From positions 124,001 to 188,000 of the IMG/VR virus record IMGVR_UViG_3300017917_001342: a DNA stretch of 64,000 nt. One strand, 5' to 3'. Position numbers and translations under genes: made by a program. Within the stretch, counting starts at the first letter, position 1; every line of letters begins with the position of its first letter. Under the pieces are notes generated by a model that worked only from the letters and a program-made list of their open reading frames with translations, ran no database searches and had not been told where the DNA came from. Positions 1,949-39,225 of the stretch are shown here, piece after piece.

Positions 1949-2452
1949 ATGCCTAGTAGAGAATTGCCGTGGATAGCAGAAGGTAAAACTGTTTTTGGTT
2001 TACACGAAACCAATAATAATCGACAACTTAGAGAGTGGCTTGTAAGTGATCGTAAAACACTAGGCGACCCCAAAGCGTTACCGTGGTGCGGCGATTACGT
2101 TGAAACTGCTATTAAGAAAAGTTTACCAAAAGAACCATTTACTGGTCCGCTTGCAGACAACCCATATTGGGCAAGAAACTGGATGAGTTTTGGTGTAGCT
2201 ACTAAACCTGTATATGGTGCAGTTGCAGTTTTCCAAAGAGAAGGCGGCGGCGGCCATGTTGGGTTTCTAGTAGGTGAAGATGCTACAGACTATTATGTAC
2301 TAGGTGGTAACCAGTCAAATGCTGTTAACATTAGCAGAATAGATAAAAAGCGTTGTTTAGGTACAAGATGGCCGAGCAGTTACAACAATCTTGGATTGAC
2401 ATTGCCTAGACTTTCTGCTACTAATATACCGAAAACAACAAACGAATTTTAA
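1949..2452 (+). CDS. TIGR02594-family NlpC/P60-like cell-wall hydrolase
   Basis: motifs LPWIAE, PWCGDYV, GGGHVGF, VLGGNQS. Confidence 0.8.
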   Translation: MPSRELPWIAEGKTVFGLHETNNNRQLREWLVSDRKTLGDPKALPWCGDYVETAIKKSLPKEPFTGPLADNPYWARNWMSFGVATKPVYGAVAVFQREGGGGHVGFLVGEDATDYYVLGGNQSNAVNISRIDKKRCLGTRWPSSYNNLGLTLPRLSATNIPKTTNEF

Positions 2453-3027: not shown

Positions 3028-3116
3028 AGGCATCCGGCGACGATGGAGTGTCGTGCTGGTCTCCAAAACCAGTGTCTGTAAAGACTTAGCGAGTTCGAAT
3101 CTCGCGATGCCTGCCA
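3028..3116 (+). tRNA. tRNA-Trp(CCA) with long variable arm
   Basis: AGGCATC/GATGCCT, CTGGT-CTCCAAA-ACCAG, GCCA. Confidence 0.8.
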
Positions 3117-5518: not shown

Positions 5519-5593
5519 GGGTTTGTAGCTCAACGGTAGAGCAGGTGTCTCTAAAACATCGAGGTGTGGGTTCGAATCCCATCTTACCCGCCA
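5519..5593 (+). tRNA. amber suppressor tRNA (CTA)
   Basis: GGTGT-CTCTAAA-ACATC; acceptor has two U.U mismatches; GCCA. Confidence 0.8.
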
Positions 5594-6694: not shown

Positions 6695-6997
6695 ATGGCA
6701 GAGTTTTGTTTTATTGGTAAAAAATGCGAAGACGCAGACAAAACTATGCTGTTTGCTGCAACTGATGACCTGCAACCAATTCTAGAAACAGACACATCTA
6801 TGGCACACTTGCTTGCACGTATTGGCAAGTTTAGCAGTGTTAAAGATGCTAAACGCAATGGCTGGGATAAACCAATCCCTAAAGGTTGGGCAGAGTTTAC
6901 TGTTGGTAAAGGTGTTAACAGAGTTGACATTTACATTTGGAACCCAACTACAACACTAGCGGAATTTGTCGAACAGGACGCTGCGACTGAGCAATAG
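6695..6997 (+). CDS. hypothetical protein, possibly S4-like RNA-binding
   Basis: LLARIGKFSSVKDAKRNGW resembles the S4-domain helix pattern; AGG RBS. Confidence 0.45.
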   Translation: MAEFCFIGKKCEDADKTMLFAATDDLQPILETDTSMAHLLARIGKFSSVKDAKRNGWDKPIPKGWAEFTVGKGVNRVDIYIWNPTTTLAEFVEQDAATEQ

Positions 6998-7812: not shown

Positions 7813-7902
7813 GGACGGTTGTTAGAGTGGTTGATTATACGCCCCTGGAAAGGGCGTCTGGATGAAAGTCCAGCGGGGGTTCGAATCCCTCACCGTCCGC
7901 CA
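7813..7902 (+). tRNA. tRNA-Ser(GGA)
   Basis: CGCCC-CTGGAAA-GGGCG, long variable arm. Confidence 0.92.
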
Positions 7903-9457: not shown

Positions 9458-9973
9458 ATGAAATACTTGGCATTTTTAGACATAGATGGCGTGTTTACGT
9501 CCAACCGTGTGCAATATGCGTCTGCCAATCCCAACGATATGTGGAATAAGTTTGATCCTATTGCAGTAGACTTTATGAACAAGCTTCACGATCGCGTAGA
9601 CGATTTGCATTTTGTTCTGATCTCTACATGGAAAGAATATCTGCGCGAAGCCGATGAGCAAACGTCACATTGGATAATTGCTGCATTTCGTAACGCAGGC
9701 TTCCGCGGCGAGTTTGCTTCGCCGTGGAAAACTAACCCAGAAAACTTCCCACGTTTTTATGAGCGTGGTATGACTCGTGCAAATGAAATCAAAGAATATC
9801 TTGAAGTCTATGCACCTAGTAACAAAGACTACATTATCTTTGATGATAATGATTACGGGTTTGAAAAGGTACTCGGTAAAAAACGTTGGGTGCATACAGA
9901 CCATGAAAACGGCATCCTTTGGAAACATCAACAACATGCAATGAGCATTGTTGGCCAGTGGGATCCAAAATAA
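9458..9973 (+). CDS. HAD-superfamily phosphatase (Swiss-army-knife RNA-repair type, HAD_SAK_2-like)
   Basis: FLDIDGV, LISTWK, YIIFDD motifs. Confidence 0.75.
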   Translation: MKYLAFLDIDGVFTSNRVQYASANPNDMWNKFDPIAVDFMNKLHDRVDDLHFVLISTWKEYLREADEQTSHWIIAAFRNAGFRGEFASPWKTNPENFPRFYERGMTRANEIKEYLEVYAPSNKDYIIFDDNDYGFEKVLGKKRWVHTDHENGILWKHQQHAMSIVGQWDPK

Positions 9974-9976
9974 TCT

Positions 9977-10050
9977 GCTCTAATGGTGTAGTGATAACGC
10001 AGGTCCTTGGTACGGACCAATCTCAGGTTTGATTCCTGGTTAGAGCACCA
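9977..10050 (+). tRNA. tRNA-Thr(GGT)
   Basis: GGTCC-TTGGTAC-GGACC, ACCA. Confidence 0.85.
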
Positions 10051-10055
10051 AAATA

Positions 10056-10270
10056 AAGTATCAGAAGGTTGGCTTAGAAGCAGCACATCCTTTAAAGAGT
10101 GGAACGAAGTACCACAGGAGCGAAAGATGCTATGTCGTACTGCATTGCAAGTGGCATAGTAAGATAGCTAAGTGGGAAAATACGGATAGCAACAGAGTCC
10201 CCAGAGAATACAATGGTATTACAACTGTAAGGCAACTGTTTTCCTTTGGCGTAACAGCACACTGATACTT
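10056..10270 (+). ncRNA. 23S rRNA H42-H44 (L11/GTPase-associated centre) mimic with ~150-nt insert
   Basis: AAGTATCAG/CTGATACTT stem enclosing AAGGTTGGCTTAGAAGCAGCACATCCTTTAAAGAGT ... GCGTAACAGCACA. Confidence 0.75.
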
Positions 10271-10566
10271 AGAATTCGAACGTCGTAAAGGGCATTGATG
10301 TGAAGCTGTAAACTCAGTTTAACAAGCGAAGAACCTATGGACGGTGGCATTGGTCTATGACTTGGCCATGAATGAGATCTTGAAAAATTAGATACTGGGA
10401 ACCTTTTAAGCTAACCGGGAGCCGCTATCATTCACGTTCGATTATAAGAATGCTCCTTGCTGTGTTCTGCACATTTCACGGCGAGGGAAGGGGGACAGTG
10501 CAGGTCCCCCGAGAGATTTGACAAACCGTACTGTTTACAGTAATCTATAAAAAAGATAGGCACAAT

Positions 10567-11016
10567 ATGAAGATCGAATATCGCAAAGGCAACCTGTTTG
10601 ATACCGACATACTGCACATTGTACACGGTTGCAATGCACAGGGTGTAATGGGATCCGGTGTTGCTAAAATTGTCAAAGAACAGTACTTCGATGCATTTAA
10701 GTTCTATGCAGAACAGTATGATGAATCAGGTCTTAAACTAGGCGATGTTCAGTTTGTACCATCTAACGGTAAAGTAATTGTCAACGCTATTACTCAAGAA
10801 AATTTCGGTCGCGATGGTAAACGCTATGTCGACTATAATGCGATTACCGCTGCAATGACTACAATCAATCGCGTATTAAAACTCGGTGGATACACAGAAG
10901 TTGCTATGCCACAAATTGGTGCCGGTTTAGGCGGCGGCGATTGGGATAATGTTATTTCAGGATTAATTGAATACGCAATGACTGATGTTAAACCTGTGGT
11001 TTATGTTTTAGAATAA
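10567..11016 (+). CDS. macro domain protein (ADP-ribose processing)
   Basis: KGNLF, HGCNAQGVMGSGVA, MPQIGAGLGGGDW. Confidence 0.9.
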   Translation: MKIEYRKGNLFDTDILHIVHGCNAQGVMGSGVAKIVKEQYFDAFKFYAEQYDESGLKLGDVQFVPSNGKVIVNAITQENFGRDGKRYVDYNAITAAMTTINRVLKLGGYTEVAMPQIGAGLGGGDWDNVISGLIEYAMTDVKPVVYVLE

Positions 11017-11072: not shown

Positions 11073-12017
11073 ATGGCTAGTTTACTAGACCCTGCAATAT
11101 TGTTTTTTATATTTGGTATTTTTGCGGGTTTGATTAAATCAAATCTAGCCATACCAGAACAGATTTCTAAATTTCTATCACTGTATTTGCTAATGGCATT
11201 AGGCCTTAAAGGTGGTTTTGCATTAGCTGCAAATGGCTTTACAGGCGAAATTGCATCGGTAATAGCAATAGGTTTACTATTAGCATTTGCTGTACCTATA
11301 TTAGGATATGCTGTGCTACGAACCAAATTAAATGGTTTTGACGCCGCAGCAGTTGCAGCAACTTACGGTTCAGTAAGTGCCGTCACATTTGTTACTGCAA
11401 CTCAATACTTGTCTATGGTTAACGTAGAATATGGCAGTTACATGGCAGCAGTAATGGCACTGATGGAATCACCTGCTATCATCATGGCTGTGGCATTAGC
11501 AGCGTATATCAGAGCAAGTAAGAGCGTTAGCATTAAACATGTATTGCACGAAAGCTTTACAGATGGTGCTCACATATTGCTGTTAGCAGCATTGGCTATT
11601 GGTTTTGTAACAGGTGCTAGTGGCGAAACAGTAATGAAACCATTTGTTGGTGACCTATTCAAAGGGCTGTTGGCATTCTTCCTGTTAGACATGGGACTAC
11701 AAGTTGCCAAGCGCATACCAGAACTTAGAGATAAAAGCATTGCATTGATAGTATATGCTGTTGCGTCTCCTATAGTTCATAGTATACTTGCATTAACACT
11801 GGCAGTGCTGTTTGGTGTATCTGTAGGCAACGCAATACTGTTAATGGTACTTGCTGCTAGTGCAAGTTACATTGCAGTACCAGCCGTATTAAAATTTGCC
11901 ATACCAGAAGCTAACCCTAGTGTTTACTTTGGATTGAGTTTAGGTATTACGTTCCCCTTTAACGTGCTAATAGGTATACCGTTGTATCATTGGCTAGCAT
12001 CATTAGTGATTGGATAA
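11073..12017 (+). CDS. sbtA: sodium-dependent bicarbonate transport family permease
   Basis: LLDPAILFF...SLYLLMALGLKGG, AATYGSVSAVTF, ASASYIAVPA. Confidence 0.85.
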   Translation: MASLLDPAILFFIFGIFAGLIKSNLAIPEQISKFLSLYLLMALGLKGGFALAANGFTGEIASVIAIGLLLAFAVPILGYAVLRTKLNGFDAAAVAATYGSVSAVTFVTATQYLSMVNVEYGSYMAAVMALMESPAIIMAVALAAYIRASKSVSIKHVLHESFTDGAHILLLAALAIGFVTGASGETVMKPFVGDLFKGLLAFFLLDMGLQVAKRIPELRDKSIALIVYAVASPIVHSILALTLAVLFGVSVGNAILLMVLAASASYIAVPAVLKFAIPEANPSVYFGLSLGITFPFNVLIGIPLYHWLASLVIG

Positions 12018-12020
12018 CAA

Positions 12021-12116
12021 ATGAAATACATTCTAAAATTCTTCGCTACATCGACATCGGGTGATAAGAGTTCACACAGACTCTATACTACTAGGTATGA
12101 GGATCTCTGCCAATGA
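12021..12116 (+). CDS. 31-aa ORF translationally coupled (ATGA overlap) to AOX
   Basis: MKYILKFF...YTTRYEDLCQ; stop overlaps the AOX start. Confidence 0.45.
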   Translation: MKYILKFFATSTSGDKSSHRLYTTRYEDLCQ

Positions 12117-12715
12117 CAGAGCCACAACCAAAAGACTTTAGCGATAGATTTGCTTATAGTTTAACTATGTTCTTTCGTTGGTTTGCTGATACATTTTTTG
12201 CAAAACGCTACGGACACCGTGCAGTGGTTTTAGAAACTGTTGCCGGTGTACCCGGTATGGTTGCAGGCATGTGGCAGCATCTGCGCAGTCTACGTAAAAT
12301 GGAACCAGACAAGCGTGGATGGATTCACACACTGTTAGCAGAAGCTGAAAATGAACGTATGCATTTGATGATCTTTATTGAAATTGCAAAACCAAATTGG
12401 TTTGAACGATTGATTGTAATGTTTGCACAGTTTGTGTTTTGGCATTTCTATTTTGTGCTGTATGTGTTTTTTCCAAAAACTGCACATCGCATGGTTGGAT
12501 ACTTTGAAAATCAAGCAGTTGTAAGTTATACACATTACCTGGAAGAAATTGATGCAGGTCGAGCAGAAAACATACCTGCTCCTAAAATTGCAATTGATTA
12601 CTATCACTTGCATCCCGACGCAAGGTTACGTGATGTTGTTATCGCAGTGCGATTAGATGAACAAGGTCATGCAGATGTTAATCACAGCATGGCAAATGAA
12701 TTAAGCAACGTTTGA
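12113..12715 (+). CDS. aox: alternative oxidase
   Basis: LETVAGVPGMV, EAENERMHL, ENQAVVSY, DEQGH di-iron motifs. Confidence 0.93.
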   Translation: MTEPQPKDFSDRFAYSLTMFFRWFADTFFAKRYGHRAVVLETVAGVPGMVAGMWQHLRSLRKMEPDKRGWIHTLLAEAENERMHLMIFIEIAKPNWFERLIVMFAQFVFWHFYFVLYVFFPKTAHRMVGYFENQAVVSYTHYLEEIDAGRAENIPAPKIAIDYYHLHPDARLRDVVIAVRLDEQGHADVNHSMANELSNV

Positions 12716-29039: not shown

Positions 29040-29920
29040 CACGATATTAACGTTGTGAAACGTGGATGTTGTGTTTACGCATTGGGGGTTTAGCCTCAAC
29101 AGGATAAGTGCAGTGATGCACCCAAAGCTAGAAAGCCTACATACTAGCGCCAGCAGTGGTCCATCTAAACAAGCCTGAACTAGACTTGACTCGGGTTAAA
29201 CCGAAAGCAAGTCCCGTCCGTAGAAAGGCGGTAGGCAGTAAGTTAGGAATAGTGTCCGAAAGGATAGTTGCAGAGCCAGTCGGTGAGCGATAAGAGGGTT
29301 GGCGCCCAAACACTGTTCAGCCAAACTAACGAATGCTGAAAGTTAACAGGTAGGTACAGAGTCTGAGCCCGCAAGCAAAGGCATGGTACCATTTCGAGAG
29401 TGGAAGGGTTAGGCCCCGGATACTTGAAGAAACACTGATTAGTCCGCAAGACGAAAGGTATGAGGTGTGCTGTATTGGGTATGTCAAAAGCATATTCAGC
29501 AGCCGAGGTAGCACATCTCGGATAGGTTGCAAAATCAGCTAATGGTAAGCTAATTCCCTTCTAAGGAATCGATTGCAGGTTCAACTCCTGTTTTTGAAAA
29601 ATGCAAAGTCTACCTCGGTATGTAGTGTAAGGTGTCAAATACTTGAGGCGCAAGCCAATCAAGTTCAACAAAGCTCGCAAGGCAGCGTTGATTTGTGCTA
29701 GAAGTTTCGTAGCCCGCAAGGCTTAATGGTCCGCAAGATCAACGGAAAACAAGGTGCAGAATAGCTACATACGACGAGTCTACTGCCTGACTCTAAAAAC
29801 GGCGACACTGTTAATGGACTAGGTTACCGCAAGGGACTTAGTGGATGTCGGAAGAAAGCGGCTCGCAAGGCTGGCAATAATGTCCGAAGCGTTAACATCG
29901 AACGTGTAATCTCAGCGTTT
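29040..29920 (+). ncRNA. GOLLD-like large ncRNA (5' boundary uncertain)
   Basis: ~0.9 kb without credible ORF, at least 9 GCAA/GAAA-capped hairpins, GGTAGGTAC..GAGTCTGAG, GAGGTAGCACATCTC and terminal GTAATCTCAG blocks recalled from GOLLD; tRNA-cluster context. Confidence 0.6.
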
Positions 29921-38965: not shown

Positions 38966-39225
38966 CTGTTGCATTTTTAACTGCACTGTGCTATAGTGAG
39001 TTATTGATTATGCGAAAAAAGGTTCGTAGTAGCGGCTAGTAATCCAGGAACCTTGCGGCAAATAAGGTGAGAACGCCCGCCTCACACACCAGCAATGGTA
39101 AAGTAGCGAAAGCGAAGAGATGTAGGAATCTTGTCTATATGGCAAGTTGAAAACAGGGACCCTACTATTTGCCAATACCCATTAAGATCGTCTGTAGGCT
39201 AGCCAAATTTTTAAAAAGGTGTGTT

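Follow-up and report, generated by a model that had tools for sequence, protein, structure and literature searches.

A phage RNA element that mimics the GTPase-associated centre of 23S rRNA

The natural L11/thiostrepton domain of 23S rRNA comprises 58 nt (helices 43 and 44, nt 1051-1108) of the GTPase-associated centre (GAC); crystal structures of it are 1HC8 and 1MMS. Nucleotide A1067 is universal in rRNA and central to the contacts made by EF-G, by the tRNA elbow and by thiostrepton, and ribosomes poor in uL11 activate RelA poorly and are poor in RF1-dependent termination. The domain folds independently and is the binding site of both uL11 and thiostrepton (PMC2719339); L11 binds helix 43, and L10/L12 needs helix 42 almost completely (PMC1635324). 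Here we describe a mimic of this domain in a stretch of viral DNA, the 64,000 nucleotides at positions 124,001 to 188,000 of IMG/VR virus record IMGVR_UViG_3300017917_001342, a contig of 518,643 bp; this stretch is hereafter called the window. The element lies on the + strand at 10056-10270 and consists of a 9-bp closing stem and the helix-43 and helix-44 hairpins of the GAC. Coordinates are window positions unless another locus is named, and numbers such as 1067 and 1095 follow the E. coli 23S numbering.

Like the natural domain, the phage element has a helix-43 hairpin with a 9-nt loop (stem 1057-1064/1074-1081), a 1082-1088 junction and a helix-44 hairpin. It also has an unpaired U1060, a variable nucleotide 1061 opposite A1077, and the same covariation between 1072 and the 1092-1099 pair. 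Unlike the natural domain, it is a free-standing gene in which helix 42 is replaced by a generic stem, and its family adds a helix at the 1089 bulge and sometimes another one at 1078. The family further differs by having A or G in place of U1101, by its own linkers GAGUGG and CCUUUG, and by weaker constraints on A1067 and A1070.

Other described RNAs resemble the element in part. Phages are known to bring along tRNAs, a few ribosomal proteins and translation factors; their tRNA arrays are used against host defences that target tRNAs, and pseudo-ToxI is an RNA decoy made by a phage. The element shares location, strand and probably processing with phage tRNAs and, as they do, supplies a copy of an RNA of host translation, but a fragment of rRNA cannot replace a damaged part of the ribosome as a tRNA replaces a tRNA, and it could serve only as a decoy or a sponge. 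The autoregulatory leaders of ribosomal-protein genes (for example, the rplJL leader for L10 and the rplKA leader for L1) are likewise non-ribosomal RNAs that imitate a ribosomal-protein site on rRNA. However, they are loose mimics that act in cis before ribosomal-protein genes, whereas the phage element is a discrete RNA gene in tRNA arrays and a near-exact copy that includes tertiary contacts, and the Rfam leader models do not match it. Such a leader was also rejected on context, as the neighbours in the window are HAD_SAK_2 and Macro genes and there is no ribosomal-protein gene nearby. 6S RNA is a noncoding RNA that imitates an open promoter. Bacterial Y RNAs carry a tRNA-like module (PMC4201824). 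Together with GOLLD and ROOL, which are large and phage-associated, these are structured RNAs acting in trans in imitation of another nucleic-acid ligand; the phage element is structurally unrelated to all of them and imitates a functional centre of the ribosome. No earlier description of it was found in the open full-text literature, subscription-only literature being outside that search, in line with the sequence-only reading, an earlier annotation made from the letters of the window that knew of none. Nor was one found on checking a 224-motif paper and the listing of a survey of structured phage RNAs. As far as could be found, it may thus represent a new kind of RNA, a virus-encoded replica of a ribosomal functional centre acting in trans.

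The sequence-only reading had described the two halves of the domain as strings at 10061-10100 and 10249-10265, joined by a perfect 9-bp stem and split by a structured insert of some 150 nt, with both the A1067 and the A1095 loops retained. Both strings are present at these positions, all nine pairs of the stem are Watson-Crick, both loops are kept, and the insert measures 144 nt and holds an inner hairpin (Table 1). One small correction concerns the string given for the start of the E. coli domain, where the 23S copy that we fetched has CCAGAATG and not CCAGGATG. Comparison of the E. coli rrn operon with the whole window by blastn returned a single significant match, between window 10062-10098 and 23S 1052-1087 (91.9% identity, E 2e-7); the same 23S stretch was matched in all 5426 complete E. 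coli genomes. No rRNA-like sequence was thus found elsewhere in the window, and the flanks of the match are a covarying non-rRNA stem, as expected from the earlier statement that no other 23S sequence surrounds it. The Rfam gathering scan of the window detected no rRNA and listed tRNAs, GOLLD and skipping-rope only; apart from the adjacent tRNA, no Rfam 15 family matched 9900-10600 at E values up to 10. The 3' motif occurs once in the window, against 0.02 occurrences expected by chance. A covariance model (R1) built from 11 other members of the family gave one match in the window, at 10054-10271, over its full length (75.1 bits, E 5e-18). Neither motif nor covariance-model scans found a second copy in the window. 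The observation is real and far from chance. Because the window holds no other rRNA and G1055-C1104 is all that is conserved in the sequence of the closing stem, the element is a mimic of the GAC domain and not a piece of an rRNA gene.

Homologues were collected from IMG/VR by pattern scans, for which each half (5' and 3') and also two versions free of the loops served as pattern, and further ones by BLAST searches. The fetched loci (IMG/VR contigs and cultured phages) contain at least 97 distinct full elements with both halves, so that homologues of the kind the sequence-only reading called for do exist. R1 gave 98 matches across 99 related loci, with E values down to 1e-22. A distant blastn search of GenBank phages led to Pseudomonas phages pf16 and UNO-G1W1, where the matches fell in spacers that separate tRNA genes and carry no annotation; these elements have the identical split architecture, and their closing stem differs in sequence yet pairs. 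Cultured carriers are the Pseudomonas phages pf16, UNO-G1W1, Astolliot and Milchi, Aeromonas phage 4_4572, the Xanthomonas phages XacN1, XbC2 and XaC1, Cronobacter phage GAP32, Pectobacterium phage CBB, Serratia phage BF, several Erwinia phages (the pEa_SNUABM series and Kaldavass), the Yersinia phages fHe-Yen9-03 and fHe-Yen9-04, and Acinetobacter phage ME3. Phages of the GAP32 group, which infect several host genera, share 81-90% identity over the entire 251-nt element with its insert.

A search of 596 Gb of bacterial and archaeal genomes with the 3' motif yielded 62 stretches (64 matches), only 13 of which had a recognisable 5' half. These 13 are genuine elements, mostly on tRNA-rich contigs of metagenome-assembled genomes (MAGs). 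Ten of the stretches that lacked the 5' half were examined and proved to be protein-coding DNA that matches by chance; the motif is AGCUCAC in most of them and AGCGCAC in two (L206 and L196). Since just 13 of the 62 stretches had both halves, and most of those were on tRNA-rich MAG contigs, the family is essentially restricted to phages.

RNAalifold applied to 11 compact members, the window excluded, gave four helices, namely the closing stem, helix 43, the extra helix at the base of the insert (P-ins) and helix 44, and R1 was built from those members. In the alignment based on this model, 90.2% of cells are standard pairs compared with 68.1% after shuffling, a level that none of 500 shuffles reached. 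The covariation score was 0.572, against 0.164 for shuffled alignments and at most 0.136 in controls with slid partners, and all 23 pairs showed double-sided changes. As that alignment is fitted to the model, pairs were also counted on fixed registers. Pairs 3-7 of the closing stem then used all six standard pair types and were paired in 79-89% of members, compared with approximately 40% after shuffling. The 1058:1080 pair was formed in 79 of 79 members (GC 29, UA 27, AU 19, CG 2, GU 2), and G1059-C1079 was invariant across the family. The unpaired U1060 was invariant (79/79), the opposite nucleotide 1078 being U in 66 and C in 11, and 1061 was U in 42, A in 21 and G in 16, opposite an A1077 that was invariant (79/79). 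In P-ins, the first base pair was formed in 95/95 members, the second in 91/95, and the third (GC 42, AU 18, CG 15, UA 3) in 83/95 against 47 in shuffles. The helix-44 hairpin (helix 5 of the alignment) was 99.5% paired.

The non-canonical parts of the domain are also preserved. Three variants account for the junction in 39 (UAAAGAGUG), 27 (UAAGGAGUG) and 18 (UAAUGAGUG) members. Loop conservation was counted without pattern bias, on 46 or 61 members: positions of the helix-43 loop are 80-98% conserved, with A1067 kept in 39/46 (85%) and replaced in 7/46, and A1070 kept in 37/46 and replaced in 9/46. Conservation of the structural positions is 95-98%. In the helix-44 loop, G1093 and U1094 are each conserved in 59/61, A1095 in 56/61 and A1098 in 60/61. 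Conservation in the family is highest on the helix-44 side, CCUUUGGCGUA-R-N-AGC-ACAC, and the hairpin there follows the GAC pattern (G1091-C1100, C1092-G1099, loop G-U-A-R-N-A). Covariation from C-C-G to U-U-A between 1072 and the 1092-1099 pair was reportedly known in natural rRNAs to Conn, Gutell and Draper in 1998. Among 97 distinct phage members the combination is C/C-G in 89, U/U-A in 7 and U/U-G in 1, with no exception, although the members with U-type triples may form one clade and independent events may be few. In the ribosome, C1072 forms a cis Watson-Crick/Hoogsteen pair with C1092, and its N4 is hydrogen-bonded to O6 of G1099 (PMC2952862). As the helices and the 1072/(1092-1099) triple covary, it is the authentic three-dimensional GAC fold, beyond two hairpins, that selection maintains. 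The proposal of a selected, free-standing GAC mimic is thereby strongly supported, by at least 97 homologues in which all helices and the tertiary triple covary. One phage contig, L058, has two copies of the element approximately 1 kb apart, at 1117-1234 and 2172-2363 (+), one with a C/C-G and the other with a U/U-A triple.

Table 1. Features of the window, with the parts of the GAC-mimic element first.
Feature	Position	Strand	Details
GAC-mimic RNA gene, whole, 215 nt	10056-10270	+	R1 match 10054-10271, model positions 1-106 of 106
Closing stem, 5' strand	10056-10064	+	9/9 Watson-Crick pairs with 10262-10270; replaces top of helix 42; G10064 = G1055
Helix-43 hairpin (1057-1081)	10066-10091	+	Loop UUAGAAGCA at 10074-10082; A1067 equivalent = 10076; U10069 = U1060, U10088 = U1078; extra bulged A at 10085, lineage-specific
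Junction UUAAAGAGU, UUAAAG-AGU (1082-1090)	10092-10100	+	Holds the G1087 and A1088 equivalents
Extra domain (insert), 144 nt, out of the 1089 bulge	10101-10244	+	Basal helix P-ins, 10101-10104 with 10241-10244
Inner hairpin of insert	10130-10159	+	Covaries within the sub-family; RNAalifold on 5 relatives
Linker UUUG, P-ins to helix-44 hairpin	10245-10248	+	Family-specific; CUUUG 79/95, CUUUA 9/95
Helix-44 hairpin GCGUAACAGC (1091-1100)	10249-10258	+	A1095 equivalent = 10253
ACA (1101-1103) and closing stem, 3' strand (10262-10270)	10259-10270	+	C10262 = C1104; ACAC in 86/95
tRNA-Thr(GGU), encoded CCA	9977-10050	+	ARAGORN; Rfam tRNA 53 bits; ends 5 nt before the element
HAD_SAK_2 gene (HAD domain of 'Swiss Army Knife' RNA-repair proteins)	9458-9973	+	E 8e-15
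Macro-domain gene	10567-11016	+	E 1.6e-8
tRNA-Trp, 89 nt, anticodon at position 36	3028-3116	+	ARAGORN; not among Rfam tRNA matches
tRNA with anticodon CUA	5519-5593	+	ARAGORN label 'Pyl'; amber suppressor
SbtA-type Na+-dependent bicarbonate transporter	11073-12017	+	E 2e-109
Alternative/plastoquinol-terminal-type oxidase	12113-12715	+	E 2e-80
GOLLD RNA, full length	29462-29918	+	234 bits, E 4e-65
tRNA-Arg	29527-29600		Nested in the GOLLD variable region
Skipping-rope RNA motif	39057-39173	+	46.9 bits; gathering score 36.7

Every member of the family has an extra helix, always between the A1088 equivalent and the helix-44 hairpin, and the insert appears to leave the domain at the place of the natural A1089 bulge. 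Insert lengths range from 23 to 509 nt; the minimal form, an RNA of approximately 100 nt in all, has no more than a 6-bp hairpin as its insert. At least 9 of the first 61 members (L027, L042, L048, L053, L056, L059, L063, L068 and L076) have a second hairpin in the 3' strand of helix 43, at the U1078 position that directly follows the A1077 equivalent. Because both nucleotides are unpaired inside the natural domain, we infer that the two insertion sites, 1089 and 1078, are structurally permissive. Modules such as CACCCCG-loop-GGUAAGG are conserved within sub-families of inserts, and no module is common to all of them. An origin of the inserts from another part of 23S was rejected, since Smith-Waterman comparison of 61 inserts with E. 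coli 23S, using shuffles, gave a best z of 2.5 and no recurrent target. No intron, ribozyme or other Rfam family matched the insert at E values up to 10. In the sub-family of the window, the conserved GGGAAAAU (10177-10184) could pair with UUUUCCUUU (10239-10247), which includes the 3' strand of P-ins. RNAalifold picked this pairing, which could represent an alternative conformation or a triple strand.

We also considered whether the insert of the window imitates the sarcin-ricin loop (SRL). That idea was rejected, as the candidate AGUAC-CACA-GGA has three mismatches and is not conserved in the sub-family; look-alikes with three mismatches are at chance level (3/61 members, against 2.75 expected in shuffles). 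A hairpin with an SRL-like core and a covarying flanking stem was found only in the inserts of L036 (GUACGAGAGGA, approximately 7830-7860, - strand) and L070 (GUACGAGAGGG, approximately 6715-6745, + strand). These are 2 matches in 23 kb of elements, compared with approximately 0.07 expected from the background rate, and the RNAs of these two loci, which are related members of the family, combine a GAC mimic and an SRL mimic in one molecule.

The element occupies part of a 594-nt gap between the HAD_SAK_2 and Macro-domain genes. Nearly all homologues lie within tRNA arrays or close to them, on the strand of the tRNAs. All tRNAs found in the first 61 related loci share the strand of the element, and 25 of these loci have a tRNA within 300 nt of it, often 2-15 nt away. 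Co-transcription with the tRNA-Thr and shared processing of ends are probable. In XacN1, a consensus-like promoter (TTGACT-17-TAATAT) lies just upstream and a hairpin-plus-U terminator just downstream of the element. The closing stem is followed by a U-tract in 15 of 91 members, compared with 4 and 7 in controls; in the window, the fold of the downstream spacer (10271-10520) is unexceptional (z = -1.1). All-against-all blastp of neighbouring open reading frames (ORFs), performed with those of at least 70 aa within 4 kb and then with those of at least 30 aa within 3 kb, revealed no neighbour protein conserved beyond close relatives. When the 100 nearest ORFs of the related loci were surveyed with Pfam, no family occurred in more than 2 of them, and no ribosomal-protein family was among those listed. 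The gene upstream of the XacN1 element is annotated as a 2'-5' RNA ligase, and NADAR, SIR2 and NUDIX are single neighbour cases elsewhere. A general partnership with ADP-ribosylation through the Macro domain was rejected, as the domain is present in the window and not general in the 100 nearest ORFs. A phage-encoded L11 was rejected as a partner as well, since the tblastn matches were host-contaminated records and Microcystis phage MaAM05, with no element-bearing cultured phage among them.

We tentatively favour the view that the element specifies a stable RNA which displays the L11-binding domain in trans and serves as a decoy, in all likelihood for host uL11. The phage RNAs keep the full L11 domain (helix 43, the 1082-1088 junction and helix 44), and in place of helix 42 they have a stem of arbitrary sequence. 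We favour uL11 because its complete known RNA site is present, because it is universal, as is the host range of the family, and because no phage-encoded partner is conserved. The lack of a conserved neighbour protein and the absence of element-bearing cultured phages among the L11 matches point to a ligand supplied by the host. Among the functions that the sequence-only reading had listed, uL11 binding is therefore the most plausible. L10/L12 is a less likely ligand, since the conserved core of helix 42 is replaced by a generic covarying stem. Selection for contact of A1067 with a GTPase, the tRNA elbow or thiostrepton is also less likely, given that just 85% of members conserve A1067; the loop statistics suggest that the fold and protein binding are selected rather than factor contact at this nucleotide.

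According to this view, the RNA would be transcribed with adjacent tRNAs, or from its own promoter as in XacN1, and its ends would result from cleavage by tRNA-processing nucleases or from termination at the closing stem. The RNA would then accumulate and act in trans as a decoy for a recogniser of the GAC fold, preferentially host ribosomal protein uL11. Titration of uL11 would yield uL11-poor ribosomes, with poor activation of RelA and poor RF1 termination, to the advantage of a phage whose own tRNAs flood the cell. This physiological step is the weakest of the argument. It is possible, though rather doubtful, that the RNA is a sponge that strips or withholds uL11 so that the RelA alarm fails and RF1 weakens, or that it neutralises a widespread, as yet unrecognised class of host effectors directed at the GAC; in either case it would be the first rRNA-domain decoy known in any virus.

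Several points weigh against uL11 titration. Both the helix added at 1089 and, where present, that at 1078 are close to the L11 surface and might block binding. A sponge needs to be abundant relative to some 10^4 ribosomes per cell, and exchange of uL11 within one lytic cycle may be too slow. L11 binding does not account for the near-invariant, family-specific GAGUGG...CCUUUGG junction or for A1101, and the helix-44 side is the most conserved part, while the main site of L11 is helix 43. The insert may also do more than decorate the domain, as hinted by the conserved modules that many inserts hold.

The main rival view is that the RNA lures away a GAC-directed host conflict enzyme, such as an ADP-ribosyltransferase, a nuclease or a methyltransferase of abortive infection or interbacterial warfare, either as a decoy or as a competitive substrate that resists cleavage or modification. 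The high conservation of the helix-44 side speaks for it. This would parallel the phage tRNAs that replace or out-compete host tRNAs hit by defence nucleases. We know of no antiphage system that targets the GAC. An antibacterial ADP-ribosyltransferase is known to modify the helix-44 loop at 1095-1098 (PMC8661411), and tRNA arrays, where the phage RNA resides, are recognised anti-defence loci (PMC13096335). Some neighbours also have functions in RNA repair or ADP-ribose metabolism (HAD_SAK_2 and Macro in the window, the 2'-5' RNA ligase in XacN1, and the single NADAR, SIR2 and NUDIX cases), but each occurs in just 1-2 of the 100 nearest ORFs, which argues against a general linkage. The known ADP-ribosyltransferase is reported to act on actively translating ribosomes (PMC8661411), and a free RNA may therefore escape its recognition. 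As the family spans phages of very different hosts, a universal ligand fits better than a sporadic defence, and we consider such an enzyme an unlikely target.

The variability of the inserts raises another explanation, in which the GAC fold is a compact, nuclease-resistant and possibly uL11-coated scaffold and the insert is the working part, as in a tRNA scaffold carrying an aptamer. The range of insert sizes (23-509 nt) with modules conserved inside sub-families, the SRL-like hairpin with its covarying stem in one sub-clade (L036 and L070), and the conservation of the complete 251-nt element across several host genera in the GAP32 group are consistent with it. Nevertheless, the minimal form, with its 6-bp hairpin as insert, indicates that the core alone is maintained, no module is present in all inserts, and the exposed non-structural core nucleotides A1095 and A1067 are still 85-92% conserved. 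We thus regard a scaffold role as improbable.

Direct binding of EF-G, EF-Tu-tRNA, IF2, RF3 or RelA by a mimic of the factor-binding site, tuning or draining these proteins, appears very improbable to us. Both factor-contacting loops are present, and L036 and L070 add an SRL-like hairpin, the other half of the ribosomal GTPase site. However, A1067 and A1070 are replaced in 7 and 9 of 46 unbiased members, respectively, the helix-42 core and the L10/L12 platform are absent, and the SRL-like hairpin is limited to one sub-clade, the look-alike in the window being at chance level.

Some 'phage' records do carry genuine host 23S, but an artefact, be it an assembly chimera with host rRNA as the sequence-only reading had feared, a remnant of an rRNA gene split by an intron, or a similarity due to chance, has practically no probability left and is refuted by the homologue set and the covariation: the 58-nt domain alone is present, bounded by a covarying non-rRNA stem, its architecture recurs in at least 97 distinct sequences, among them complete genomes of cultured phages, its stems covary instead of copying host rRNA, no Rfam intron or ribozyme family matched, and the inserts are unrelated to known introns and to 23S. 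One match, in Paenibacillus phage Pd_22F (L088, MZ092003.1), was discarded, as it is genuine 23S at the end of the record with no element; the bacterial 23S rRNA lies at approximately 83-85 kb in that record, probably through host contamination or mis-assembly. Host rRNA or ribosomal-protein DNA also makes up several short 'phage' records of the collection.

Other features of the window deserve mention (Table 1). The GOLLD and skipping-rope RNAs sit among its tRNAs, one of which is nested in GOLLD. The tRNA-Trp is unusually long and may carry an intron or an extended arm. The tRNA with the CUA anticodon hints at recoding of TAG in part of this 518-kb phage, and an amber-suppressor tRNA is also found near the elements of L021 and L224; there could be a connection with the known influence of uL11 on RF1 termination. 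The auxiliary metabolic genes for the SbtA-type transporter and the oxidase suggest that the host is photosynthetic, be it a cyanobacterium or another organism.

With this element, the little understood structured RNAs found clustered with phage tRNAs, such as GOLLD, ROOL and skipping-rope, gain a new class. Its family is large, and the carriers include cultivable phages whose laboratory hosts are harmless, among them pf16 of P. putida and UNO-G1W1 of P. fluorescens. For structural work on the L11/thiostrepton site and for RNA engineering, it provides a natural GAC scaffold that folds autonomously and has two permissive sites for insertions. If the RNA does act as a sponge or a decoy, it would provide viruses with a new route to manipulate the ribosome or to evade defence.

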